64,000 nt of DNA from Epithemia pelagica (Eukaryota > Protista > Bacillariophyta): NCBI GenBank assembly GCA_946965045.2, contig OX459761.1, positions 1 to 64,000 on the forward strand, in the 5' to 3' direction. Made by a program: the position numbers and the translations under genes. Positions 40,494 to 43,536 of the stretch are shown in pieces (positions within the stretch are counted from its first letter, which is position 1; each line of letters opens with the position of its first letter). The notes beneath the pieces were generated by a model. The model was not told the origin of the DNA. It ran no database searches and saw nothing but the letters and a program-made list of their open reading frames with translations.

Positions 40494-40507
40494 ACTAATA
40501 ATACATT
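40494..40507 (+). repeat. Left copy of 14-bp direct repeat (attL-like)
   Basis: ACTAATAATACATT, identical to 43516-43529. Confidence 0.9.
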
Positions 40508-40568
40508 TCAGAGTTTAATTGGGATTCCTCGTGTGACCTTTGAACGATCTCTTAAATTAAAATATTTA
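40494..40568 (+). pseudogene. 3' continuation of the split rep gene
   Basis: TNNTFQSLIGIPRVTFERSLKLKYL begins with the same TNNTF codons that end ORF339, in the same frame. Confidence 0.65.
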
Positions 40569-40984
40569 CCTATCAAGGTGGGACAAATCAGGAAGTTAAA
40601 TCAATTAATATATATAATGAAGAAGAAAATCGAATTGCAATCTTCAAACGATCTACAGGTGAATTTATGACATTTTGTGAGCCTAATGATGACGAACGAG
40701 AGGATCTACTAGAAACAGGAAACTTTGGAGGTCAATTTGGATGGTTCAGCGGTCAAGCGAAAAATGTTCCTCCAAAGGTTAAAGCAGAACAAAATGTTGC
40801 CGATGAAATTACGCCAATCGATAGCTTTGAGAGCCATGTGATGGGTATAACGCCTGCTCCTGCGTATGAATTTTCAAGCGTAGACGAAGGACAAAATCCA
40901 GGATTTACTCCACTGAATAGTTTCGATAGCGACGTTATGGGAATAACACCGTTAGATTCTTCATCATCGGACTATCAAATTTAA
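40568..40984 (+). pseudogene. Colicin D-like tRNase toxin, C-terminal half only, plus repeat tail
   Basis: TYQGGTNQEVKSINIYNEEENRIAIFKRSTGEFMTFCEPNDDEREDLLETGNF aligns by eye with the colicin D C-terminus (GTY...FN...VVIIKSNGEFLSGW...YLETGEL); includes the 105-aa ORF 40667-40984. Confidence 0.65.
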
Positions 40985-41004
40985 TTAACCTCAAGAAATA
41001 ATGT

Positions 41005-41472
41005 ATGATCAATATTAATTATAATCTAAAACGCCATATTGAATTATTAAAACAGGAAAAAAAAATTCTAAATGAAAAAAAATCTTTTTTGAAAGAAAAT
41101 CCAAAAGAAGCTTTAGAATTAATTAAATACGGCGCGAAAGTTAGTCAACATATTGTGTGGGAAGATCGATTTGAAATTGCTTCAATAATGGAAGACTTTT
41201 TGAGTAAAAAGATAAATGCGCATGAATTTCATGATAGTGTGTTTGGACTTCGTCGTAAGCATTCAGAGAAATGTAAAAGATTTCTATCAAAATTAGTTTC
41301 GGAAGAAATAAAAGATTTTTGTCCGAACAAAAATGCACATAAATTAAAAGGATTTTTATCGGCCTTGTATTTTGAATGCGAGCATTTTGAAACGAATTTC
41401 GATGAAGCCGAATTATATACTTCTATTGAAAATGGATTTTTTAAATTTCAAATAATTTTGAATGAAGAGTGA
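41005..41472 (+). CDS. Colicin D immunity (ImmD)-like protein, 155 aa
   Basis: FLSKKINAHEF...LRRK and LYFECEHFE match ImmD FLASKITAIEF...ERRR and LFMAAERFE; lies directly downstream of the toxin remnant. Confidence 0.65.
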   Translation: MININYNLKRHIELLKQEKKILNEKKSFLKENPKEALELIKYGAKVSQHIVWEDRFEIASIMEDFLSKKINAHEFHDSVFGLRRKHSEKCKRFLSKLVSEEIKDFCPNKNAHKLKGFLSALYFECEHFETNFDEAELYTSIENGFFKFQIILNEE

Positions 41473-41503
41473 TAAATTATATTACTCTTCATTCAAAATT
41501 ATT
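41451..41503. terminator. 20-bp inverted repeat at the end of ORF155
   Basis: AATAATTTTGAATGAAGAGT / ACTCTTCATTCAAAATTATT. Confidence 0.7.
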
Positions 41504-41785
41504 TTATTTTTATCTTAACCACTAAAACCCGACCATTTTAAGGCCAGAATTTCATTGAGGCATCAGAGCTTTAAAAGACCCTCTCAGAGCATATTTGAAA
41601 TTACTTCCTTGGCTTGATTTGATCCCCGATTAAACCCTTCAATATTTCCCACCAACATTGTTCATCTGGGGTAAACCCTAAATGAACCTCTATATTTTGT
41701 TTTTTATTTATTATTTTTAAACCCTTTACAAATAAATTTCTAAAATGCATACTTAATAAACAAATGTTAAAGAAGGAGTAAAAAG

Positions 41786-42430
41786 ATGTTTGAAGAAATT
41801 CCAAAAAATTGTAAATATGCGTATGCACGCGTAAGTTCGAAATCACAACAAGATAATTCTTCTTTGGAATTTCAGAAACAAGAGTTTCTGAAACTCGGGG
41901 TTCCTGAACAAAATATCCGAGTTGAAGTTGGATCTGCTGCGGATCCCATCAAGGATCGGCCAATTTTCTACAGTTTGATTGATAATGAATTAACTCAGAA
42001 TGACCTCTTATTTGTTACTAAAATTGATCGTTGCAGTAGAAATACACTTGAATTTTTAAAATTACAAGAACGTCTCCATAAAAAAGGTGTTACCTTTATT
42101 TCATTGGATTTACCATATTCCAATGATATGGCTGTTAATAAGTTAATCAGTACTAATCTAGCAGCTATTGCTACCTTTGAGAATGAAAGAAGAAAAGAAC
42201 GTCAACGTCAAGGAATTAAAGCAGCCAAAAAAGCTGGTAAATATTTAGGAAGAAAAACTGTTATTACTAAAAAACTAATTGCACAAGTTCAGGATCTAAA
42301 AGAAAATAAAAATTTATCCATTACCGAAATAGCTAAAATTACGGGTCGGGGTCGAAATACCATTTATAAAGTTTTAAAAGAGGAATTAAAATATATTCCT
42401 TACAATCGATTAGTTAAATCAGATAAATAA
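41786..42430 (+). CDS. serC: Serine recombinase, resolvase/invertase family (called serC in diatom plastomes; not phosphoserine aminotransferase)
   Basis: YARVS with catalytic S17, DRCSR, GKYLGRK, C-terminal HTH (SITEIAKITGRGRNTIYK); AGGAG SD. Confidence 0.95.
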   Translation: MFEEIPKNCKYAYARVSSKSQQDNSSLEFQKQEFLKLGVPEQNIRVEVGSAADPIKDRPIFYSLIDNELTQNDLLFVTKIDRCSRNTLEFLKLQERLHKKGVTFISLDLPYSNDMAVNKLISTNLAAIATFENERRKERQRQGIKAAKKAGKYLGRKTVITKKLIAQVQDLKENKNLSITEIAKITGRGRNTIYKVLKEELKYIPYNRLVKSDK

Positions 42431-42516
42431 ACTATAAAATGTTCTCTTATCGCCCTCTCAGGAGCTCAATAATCAATTTTAAATCATTTTACGTATAAAC
42501 CTACAGGAGGTAAAAA

Positions 42517-43536
42517 ATGGATCCAAAATCCTTAAATTTTCATTATCAAAATTTAGTTGTTGATTGGATATCTTTTAAGTTTCAAGATTCACAGTGTGAT
42601 CAAAATAAAATTGCAAATTATTTTTTTAATCTTGGATTTAACTCTTATCAACAATCTGGAAAATTATCAAGACCAATTCAAGAAAAGATTTTAGAGAAAT
42701 CTAAAAATCAATTTCAGATTTTTTTTCTTAACGATCATCCGTATTGGAAAGGTACGATTCTTCAATTATCAGGCTCAAATGCTAGTAGATTTTATTTTCT
42801 TGCAAAAAGAAACAAAATCGATTGGCAAATTCTTGAAAAAGCTACACTAAGTCGTTTTGATATAAATTACTGCCGAGAAAATAAAAGAGATAAAATCTCT
42901 TCATCTGATTTTATTGAAAATTGTTATACTAAATTAAAACGAACAAATTATAAAGTTCAGCTTGAGAAAAATAGAAAAGGTTCTATTCTAAGAATAGGAA
43001 ATCGAAAAGCTAATCATTACGGACGTATTTATCAACAAAACAATTCTTTAAAATTCGAGTATGAGATGAAAGGTAGATTTCTTCAGAAATTTCATAAATT
43101 ATTGGTTTCAAATAATTTTGAAGAAATCGAATCTAAGTTAACAAAACAATTTCTATTTTATTTTGGAAAATTATTACCTCTTCAACATTCTTATCTTGAT
43201 TGGTTGGTGCTGCAGTTACGTCCTATTCGAAAGCAAAAGACTTTTCAACTTGGTTTACAATCCGATTATATAAAATCTGAAAGCAGCATAAATTCAGAAA
43301 CTCTAATTCAATTTATCCAATTTTTGAATTATGCTCAAAATTTAGATTACACAATTCAAAATTTGGATGAAATTTCTTATAGAAAAGTTACTTTTATAAT
43401 TAGAGATTTTATAACCTATCAAAATCCTACAATTAGTTCCAAGAATCGTTATCAATTACAAAAAACAAAAGATTTTTTTCAACGTCTTCAAACTGGAGTA
43501 TTAATAACTTCATTCACTAATAATACATTCAAATGA
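42517..43536 (+). CDS. Plasmid replication initiator, Rep_trans-like, C-terminally truncated
   Basis: VDWISF, SRFD (R113/D115), IGNRK...RIY (Y172), KFEYEMKG; AGGAGG SD at 42505-42510. Confidence 0.7.
   Translation: MDPKSLNFHYQNLVVDWISFKFQDSQCDQNKIANYFFNLGFNSYQQSGKLSRPIQEKILEKSKNQFQIFFLNDHPYWKGTILQLSGSNASRFYFLAKRNKIDWQILEKATLSRFDINYCRENKRDKISSSDFIENCYTKLKRTNYKVQLEKNRKGSILRIGNRKANHYGRIYQQNNSLKFEYEMKGRFLQKFHKLLVSNNFEEIESKLTKQFLFYFGKLLPLQHSYLDWLVLQLRPIRKQKTFQLGLQSDYIKSESSINSETLIQFIQFLNYAQNLDYTIQNLDEISYRKVTFIIRDFITYQNPTISSKNRYQLQKTKDFFQRLQTGVLITSFTNNTFK
43516..43529 (+). repeat. Right copy of 14-bp direct repeat (attR-like)
   Basis: ACTAATAATACATT, ending 3 nt before the thiS ATG. Confidence 0.9.

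Follow-up and report, generated by a model that had tools for sequence, protein, structure and literature searches.

How did a small plasmid come to lie between two native genes of a plastid chromosome, and what joined the two molecules? The question is raised by a 3022-bp insert between trnH and thiS in a 64-kb stretch of diatom plastid DNA (contig OX459761.1 of Epithemia pelagica, positions 1 to 64,000; "the window" denotes this whole stretch). The insert carries an in-frame stub, a 105-amino-acid (aa) open reading frame (ORF), a 155-aa ORF, a serine recombinase gene (serC), and a 339-aa ORF resembling a plasmid replication gene (rep). An earlier interpretation made from the letters of the window, hereafter the sequence-only reading, had proposed that a circular plasmid entered by a single, Campbell-type crossover through a 14-bp identity in its own large ORF. 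Comparison with related contigs bears this out, since both junctions (attL and attR), the empty plastome site (attB), and the uninterrupted plasmid site (attP) could all be read. We assign a probability of about three in four to the explanation developed here, namely, that a plasmid of the pCf type underwent a single crossover with the plastome at a chance 14-bp identity, through short-homology recombination.

Four sites around a common 14-mer

An exact-match search of the window located the 14-mer ACTAATAATACATT exactly twice, both times on the + strand and at the two places indicated by the sequence-only reading (40494-40507 and 43516-43529). No third copy was found in the 64 kb, even with one mismatch allowed. 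The two copies bracket the 3022-bp insert between trnH and thiS. ORF translations also confirmed what had been claimed for its ends: the right copy encodes T334-N-N-T-F of the 339-aa ORF at 42517-43536, which ends ...TNNTFK-stop, and the left copy runs on in frame as QSLIGIPRVTFERSLKLKYL. A lone 14-nt repeat is unremarkable in this AT-rich DNA, since the window contains 19 exact direct repeats of at least 14 nt at spacings of 0.5 to 6 kb. The significance of this one comes from the switch in homology, to the empty plastome on one side (contigs L085 and L086) and to the intact plasmid ORF on the other (contig L001), which occurs exactly there with a 14-nt overlap in each case.

The empty plastome site was found through ThiS, a protein that occurs with identical sequence on three contigs: the source of the window (ENA ERZ21939226, ctg1185l, 134,662 nt), L085, and L086, the latter two being short contigs from other metagenomes. 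In L085, positions 1-684 correspond to window 39824-40507 (99.85% identity) and positions 671-907 to window 43516-43752 (100%). L086 aligns in the same split pattern, and the flanks of both are 98.8-100% identical to the window. Both contigs present the exact attB, with a single 14-mer located in the trnH-thiS spacer, 3 nt before thiS: ...AAAAATAATT-ACTAATAATACATT-CAAATG(thiS). This is precisely the trnH/thiS intergenic sequence that had been predicted to remain once the insert was deleted, and it includes the single 14-mer expected before thiS in relatives. The insertion is polymorphic, with empty-site alleles in other samples.

Relatives with about 90% identity (L087, L089, L093, and others) have trnH directly before thiS, and in Joint Genome Institute metagenomes nearly every one of 80 diatom plastome loci has trnH ~90 nt before thiS, the adjacency of the two genes holding in about 70 diatom loci. 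Because of this adjacency in the ~90% relatives and in diatoms generally, the empty state is ancestral and the insertion derived and polymorphic. The polarity might be reversed within this species, the inserted state being older and the empty contigs having arisen by exact excision across the 14-bp repeat. Direct repeats allow deletions of that precision, and the near identity of the flanks of the empty alleles would fit. Yet the distribution of the empty arrangement makes the insertion derived at some depth, so that the reversed polarity, which we consider highly improbable, would concern only an additional reversion and would be compatible with the explanation that we prefer.

The plasmid partner is readable on L001, a plasmid-type contig whose positions 7-1537 correspond to window 41999-43529 and whose positions 1524-1598 correspond to window 40494-40568 (100%), the overlap between the two alignments being exactly the 14-mer. 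L001 carries a single 14-mer and reads straight through it as ...TNNTF-QSLIGIPRVTFERSLKLKYL... Because L001 aligns to the right end of the insert and then to the left end, sequence that is contiguous on the plasmid has been split between the two ends at the 14-mer. A 79%-identical relative, L002, gave the same split alignment. Homologous proteins agree: P0001, the closest homologue of the 339-aa ORF, reads ...TSFTNNTFQSLIGIPRVTFERSLKLKYLICNVW..., and P0457 (483 aa, from the same 90% cluster and encoded on a 4702-nt contig) matches the window ORF at 98.8% identity over its own residues 1-339 and reads through the site, as does P0454 (YP_010472367.1, a plastid protein of Pleurosigma intermedium). 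Homologues of the large ORF are 478-491 aa long and continue after TNNTF or TDTTF with QSL(I/V)(G/A)IP, the kind of continuation on which the sequence-only reading had staked its proposal. Placed side by side, attL, attR, attP (from L001), and attB (from L085) display a clean reciprocal exchange of flanks around the common 14-mer. The two molecules that entered a single crossover and the two junctions that came out of it are readable to the base, and the 14-mer was present in both partners before insertion.

L001 differs from the window elsewhere in the same gene. Between L001 603-640 and window 42557-42640, the start called for P0001 is in another frame (MIKIKLQIIFFNLGFN versus ...CDQNKIANYFFNLGFN), which suggests a length difference in the T run near window 42613-42622, due either to a sequencing error or to a real frameshift in L001.

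That plasmids of this family are circular was observed on two related contigs. The head of L096 matches its own tail, giving a circular unit of ~4.61 kb, and L097 repeats L096 in circularly permuted form at 99.8-99.96% identity; both have the gene order serC(217), ORF486, ORF445, ORF155.

Chance identity or directed integration

The sequence of events that we favor would start with a pCf-type diatom plasmid (serC, a ~483-aa Rep_trans-like initiator, ORF445, and ORF155) meeting the plastid chromosome. One recombination within the 14 bp would join plasmid rep codons 334-338 to the plastome trnH-thiS spacer. The crossover opened the circle inside rep: the first 338 codons are now found at the insert's right end, the 20 that follow them are at its left end, and either junction has kept one 14-mer. 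The exchange would be driven by the short identity itself, via host short-homology or microhomology-mediated recombination. It could proceed as a reciprocal crossover or as break repair by copying once around the circle, with the same product from either route.

Was the 14-mer a dedicated site or a coincidence? L002 has 2 mismatches in it, the plastomes of the L087 group (~90% relatives) lack four of its bases (ACAT), and L093 is divergent throughout it. In the plasmid protein family, it encodes variable residues (TNNTF versus TDTTF, QNDCF, and DDTHF). With such differences among both related plasmids and ~90% plastome relatives, and with variable residues encoded by it, the 14-mer does not behave as a conserved attachment site. 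Identities of 14 nt are also expected by chance, because 18 exact matches of at least 14 nt exist between the insert and the remaining 61 kb. On both grounds, non-conservation and chance frequency, the core of the sequence-only reading behaves as a fortuitous microhomology and not as a dedicated site. Other insertions of the same rep lineage point the same way: in L003 (beside rpl35) and in the gene of P0454, rep is uninterrupted across the position of the 14-mer, and those insertions must therefore have been opened at other points of the circle.

The insert brings its own recombinase, and SerC could have catalyzed a site-specific integration in which attP and a pseudo-site in the plastome had the 14-mer as their common core. 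The serC gene is intact and lies inside the insert, and such recombinases have been assumed to help these plasmids spread (PMC2873285). SerC is, however, a 214-aa resolvase-type enzyme with a Resolvase domain and HTH_7 only, which is not the makeup of a large serine integrase. Resolvase-type serine recombinases exchange strands at a 2-bp overlap in a bound dyad site and have no need for 14 bp of identity. The variability of the 14-mer among related plasmids is also not that of a conserved binding site; the conserved recombinase- or origin-like motif adjacent to serC (41659-41687) lies 1.8 kb from the junction, and other plasmid copies were opened elsewhere on the circle. No tyrosine recombinase was detected in the insert or the window by tblastn. 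Catalysis by SerC thus appears quite unlikely. The exchange was probably not driven by the plasmid's recombinase, and short-homology recombination is more likely than recombinase-directed integration, as far as sequence comparison can tell.

The initiator encoded by the plasmid offers another route, by which a Rep_trans-like protein would nick the plasmid at the 14-mer, nick the plastome at a pseudo-origin of identical sequence, and join the strands, much as rolling-circle plasmids initiate and terminate at pseudo-origins. In fold, the large ORF is similar to RepSTK1 and RepDE (see below); plasmids of the pT181 family have their origin inside rep, and short origin-like sequences can serve as termination sites. 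However, nick sites of Rep_trans proteins sit on an extruded hairpin (PMC4797284), whereas no hairpin or other stem-loop was found in the attP region (z-scores of +1.2 and +1.6). Moreover, the 14-mer varies between closely related plasmids, and the conserved noncoding motifs are elsewhere. We regard Rep-mediated strand transfer as very unlikely.

An assembly artifact, in which the plastome contig took in a free plasmid at the 14-mer, would agree with the presence of the insertion allele on one contig only and of the junction-specific 339-aa ORF and the 105-aa ORF (ORF105) on no other contig searched. But 14 nt is far below the overlap or k-mer lengths used by assemblers, and the contig name ctg1185l suggests a long-read assembly. 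The inserted copy also has a private 1.5-kb deletion found in no free-plasmid contig, and two clean reciprocal junctions are not expected from a chimera. Among the alternatives, this one is the least credible.

Two further candidates were rejected. A target-site duplication made by a transposase does not fit, as the 14-mer also occurs at the permutation point of the uninterrupted plasmid ORF. Nor does insertion of a linear piece slightly over unit length, as the 14-mer is already in the empty site.

Several points weigh against integration by chance short homology. The insertion allele is on one contig of one metagenome, and its junctions are known from assembly alone. The free circle that was examined is that of the related plasmid L096/L097. 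Two enzymes are encoded in the insert, a serine recombinase that is intact and a nicking protein of which the catalytic part remains. Identities of 15-17 nt with the plastome also exist, so length alone does not explain the use of the 14-mer, and the tolerance of an intergenic insertion is an assumption. It also seems unlikely that the insert is still mobile via the 14-mer, with some of the empty alleles as excision products and a plasmid enzyme as the agent of the exchange (the Rep_trans-like protein working at a pseudo-origin, for instance). If it were, these plasmids would be natural shuttles between episomal and plastome states in diatoms, and the excised circle, if formed, would carry a truncated rep.

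Gene content of the insert and fold of its large ORF

The insert had been taken for a complete plasmid, but it is not one. Related free circles measure ~4.6 kb (serC, a ~485-aa ORF, ORF445, and ORF155), and ~1.5 kb of this is absent here. Because homology to L001 stops and homology to ORF445 starts at 40568, the missing part comprises rep codons ~359-483, the spacer, and ORF445 codons 1-307 (Table 1). The order of these parts is visible on plasmid contigs, where ORF445 is flanked by the large ORF and ORF155: L001 ends in sequence that matches the first part of ORF445, and L101, which is 96% identical to window 40568-41601, continues upstream as an intact ORF445. Full-length ORF445 relatives (406-465 aa) match the window at their C-termini only. 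The integrated copy is thus a defective deletion derivative whose joint has a 1-nt overlap, and loss before, during, or after integration would all be compatible with it. The free 4.6-kb plasmid has a tandem array of ~33-nt units in the interval from rep to ORF445 (L096 2081-2283 and L097 1-190); the insert lacks the array because this region was deleted.

The deletion also changes how the ORFs of the insert are to be read. The sequence-only reading had calculated that circularizing the 3022 bp would give a 391-aa ORF, and the arithmetic stands. As a native gene, this ORF does not, since it is chimeric, composed of a truncated rep followed by 33 residues of out-of-frame ORF445 sequence, and native proteins have ~480 aa. 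ORF105 (40667-40984) was rejected as an independent gene, as it is the ATG-started C-terminal 105 residues of ORF445.

Table 1. Features at and around the insert (window coordinates)
Feature	Position	Strand	Evidence
trnH(GUG), left native neighbor	40298..40371	-	ARAGORN; Rfam tRNA, 57 bits
Native trnH-thiS spacer, left part	40372..40493	+	Identical in empty-site contigs L085 and L086
attL core, the crossover 14-mer ACTAATAATACATT at the left junction	40494..40507	+	Exact match; L085 homology ends at 40507, L001 homology begins at 40494
Stub of the large rep-like ORF, codons 334-358 (TNNTFQSLIGIPRVTFERSLKLKYL)	40494..40568	+	100% over 75 nt to L001 1524-1598; same residues in P0001, P0457, and P0454
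Internal deletion joint, at which rep codon 358 meets ORF445 codon 308 and one base (A) is common to both	40568..40569		L001 homology stops at 40568; L097, L099, and L101 homology starts at 40568
ORF445 remnant, residues 308-445 and stop	40568..40984	+	tblastn with L097 ORF445 residues 308-445, 87.7% identity
Plasmid ORF155, intact, function unassigned	41005..41472	+	154 homologues, mostly 155 aa
Terminator-like hairpin after ORF155 (stem of 20 pairs, then a T run)	41454..41500	+	Hairpin prediction
Conserved noncoding motifs upstream of serC: GACCCTCTCAGAGCATATTTGAA (41577-41599) and TGTTCATCTGGGGTAAACCCTAAA (41659-41682)	41577..41687	+	Alignment across plasmid lineages; BLAST to L095
serC, small serine recombinase (resolvase domain and C-terminal helix-turn-helix), intact	41786..42430	+	Pfam Resolvase, 1.9e-27; HTH_7, 1.4e-6
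Large rep-like ORF, 5' part with codons 1-338 plus a K and stop made by the junction	42517..43536	+	98.8% to P0457 residues 1-339
Right copy of the 14-bp crossover sequence (attR core)	43516..43529	+	Exact match; alignment to L001 runs up to 43529, that to L085 restarts at 43516
thiS, right native neighbor	43533..43736	+	Pfam ThiS, 2.4e-9; identical protein on empty-site contigs

What kind of protein does the large ORF encode? The 339-aa fragment of the window gave no Pfam match, and a sequence-only search of the PDB with the family profile gave nothing useful, so that the fold search alone was informative. An AlphaFold2 model of a full-length relative, P0002, was built from a 64-sequence alignment (mean predicted local distance difference test score of 85). 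Its top six PDB matches are chains of RepSTK1 (4CIJ) and RepDE (4CWE and 4CWC), all of them Rep_trans initiators. In this Foldseek comparison, the N-terminal ~270 residues were matched with a probability of 1.0, E values of ~1e-6, and target-normalized template modeling scores of up to 0.51. Weak matches to PF02486 were obtained for 31 of the 64 homologues at residues ~125-240 (best E value, 5.4e-5), all below the curated cutoff; the best score was 19 bits against a cutoff of 29.6 among the 10 homologues scanned individually. Fold and weak matches thus lend support to the "rep" label given in the sequence-only reading. No relatives of the large ORF were found in IMG/VR viral contigs.

Conserved columns of the 64-sequence alignment were compared with RepDE as well. 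R113/D115, R170-x-Y172, and E181/E183 are invariant, D16 is nearly so, and all of them fall within the 339 aa that the right end of the insert retains. The metal-binding and catalytic residues of RepDE are D46, D142, R189, Y191, and E214 (PMC4797284), and the spacing of D16/D115/R170-x-Y172/E181/E183 resembles theirs, the two sets being compared by spacing only. The diatom protein shares with the Rep_trans proteins of the pT181 family (RepD, RepDE, and RepSTK1) the fold of its N-terminal part and a G-x-R-x-S...R-x-Y block with acidic residues at similar spacing. It differs from them in its length of ~480 aa with extra C-terminal domains, in its PF02486 scores below the cutoff, and in its host compartment, a eukaryotic plastid. 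The model supports reading the large plasmid ORF as a rolling-circle initiator of Rep_trans-like kind, an assignment based on fold that falls short of formal Pfam membership. The integrated rep is very probably nonfunctional, because its C-terminal quarter is missing. The ~480-aa ORF of pCf-type plasmids was unannotated in the databases and literature searched, and a literature search gave nothing relevant that linked diatom plasmids to rolling-circle replication, Rep_trans proteins, or microhomology. The likeness to these initiators would imply rolling-circle replication and hence provides a testable mechanism.

As for the remaining parts of the insert, the homologues of ORF155 include proteins of Nitzschia ovalis and Amicula sp. 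and a 100-aa entry labeled Sro51_chlor; on plasmid contigs, ORF155 always follows ORF445 after 20 nt. The serC gene of the window is 64.6% identical to that of L097. Its exact protein sequence (P0449) occurs on two contigs, one of which is the source of the window; the other could be a free plasmid or a second inserted allele. Upstream of serC, TGTTCATCTGGGGTAAACCCTAAA lies in an imperfect palindrome (GTTCAT-N16-ATGAAC), and TAAACCCT recurs at 41632 and 41720. A second conserved motif upstream of serC is CCCTCTCAGAGC, and the similar GCCCTCTCAGGAGCTC stands before rep (42442-42457). Both serC-upstream motifs are common to plasmid lineages whose Rep proteins are only 29% identical. We infer that the conserved motifs at 41577-41599, 41659-41687, and 42442-42457 are candidate res, origin, or promoter elements. 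Rfam identified no known RNA family in the insert, the sole match being trnH outside it. The insert also contains an exact 17-nt direct repeat, TTTCAAATAATTTTGAA, at 41446-41462 (end of ORF155) and 43106-43122 (within rep), which exceeds the junction repeat in length and could mediate further deletion.

The surroundings are those of a diatom-type plastome, in the order ccsA, rps16(-), rps4(-), trnH-GUG(-), the 3.0-kb insert, thiS(+), syfB(-), psb28, groEL, and dnaK. The native trnH-thiS spacer has 139 nt, ~50 nt more than the ~90 nt typical of other diatoms. It contains an inverted repeat (CCGTCTA at 40413-40419 and TAGACGG at 40461-40467), which was not caused by the insertion, because it is also in the empty-site contigs. 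The best promoter-like site of the region, a consensus match of 10/12 with an extended -10, is in the native spacer at 40428-40455 and now points into the insert, toward the terminator-like hairpin, which is a strong one. At the other end, the TGA of the truncated rep overlaps the ATG of thiS (ATGA, window 43530-43536). Because its likely promoter is now 3 kb off and behind a terminator-like hairpin, both identified as consensus matches only, thiS would need transcription from within the insert, and its expression may depend on read-through from there.

Comparison with known systems

Plasmid-derived DNA in diatom plastomes has been known since hybridization work in 1992 and from genome papers since 2010. 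The entry of plasmids into plastomes is thus not new; the present insert is an unusually clean instance, with its junctions, its empty site, and the uninterrupted gene. The rule to which it points is that any chance identity of ~14 bp can serve and that a dedicated site is unneeded. Inserts at differing places in differing species would then be explained, because chance identities suffice. The locus makes a poorly understood route of foreign DNA into plastids directly testable, and it suggests a way in which DNA delivery to diatom plastids might exploit short homologies.

The closest known systems are the pCf1/pCf2-type plasmids of pennate diatoms, 3.5-4.6-kb circles on which a serC resolvase gene stands beside a ~480-aa ORF (ORF217/218 type next to ORF482/484 type) (PMC2873285). 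The insert has the same genes in the same order, with serC followed by the large ORF, and we made the link through named homologues (an ORF504_seminavis entry, Schizostauron, and Pleurosigma) and published descriptions. Pieces of such plasmids have been described in expanded intergenic regions of diatom and dinotom plastomes (PMC2873285, PMC3971590, PMC8070900), and our comparison covered the pCf remnants of Kryptoperidinium foliaceum, Cylindrotheca, Seminavis, and Haslea silbo. Imanian et al. remark that integration sites had not been revealed by any sequence data. The inserts in these papers are old, fragmented, or multi-plasmid and come without junctions, empty sites, or a mechanism, whereas the case in the window is single, recent, and polymorphic.

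Other plastome insertions of related plasmids differ in form. In L003 (2415-3866), rep stands beside rpl35 with a tyrosine recombinase nearby; in L094 (4695-9529), a related rep is present as scattered pieces downstream of atpA. The P. intermedium plastome has a 425-aa version of rep (P0454) that is 98.8% identical, a likeness that may reflect plasmid sharing rather than host relatedness. These three are independent insertions opened at different points of the circle. L095 (1-10256) contains a nearly complete 4.6-kb plasmid unit, further plasmid-like ORFs, and a second serC-like segment at its end, and looks like a cointegrate or multi-plasmid array. No second case of junction microhomology was obtained from L094, L095, or L003, whose inserts are composite or degraded.

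Campbell-type integration of phage lambda by attP x attB recombination offers a formal parallel: one crossover between circle and chromosome, a permuted gene order, and one copy of a short common core at each junction. The common core of lambda has 15 bp, against 14 bp here. The two differ in that the insert comes without a tyrosine integrase, its core is not conserved and looks fortuitous, and other copies of the plasmid were opened elsewhere.

Recombination between short repeats in plastids is the nearer parallel in mechanism. In Arabidopsis whirly mutants, plastid rearrangements reportedly occur at repeats of ~10-18 bp, and the NICE1 element of tobacco plastids is said to have formed via a 16-bp imperfect repeat. 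As in those cases, the exchange in the window would have occurred at an identity of 10-20 bp without a site-specific enzyme, the outcome being set by where the identities lie. Those cases were intramolecular or involved engineered DNA, whereas the insert between trnH and thiS would represent the capture of a natural foreign replicon.

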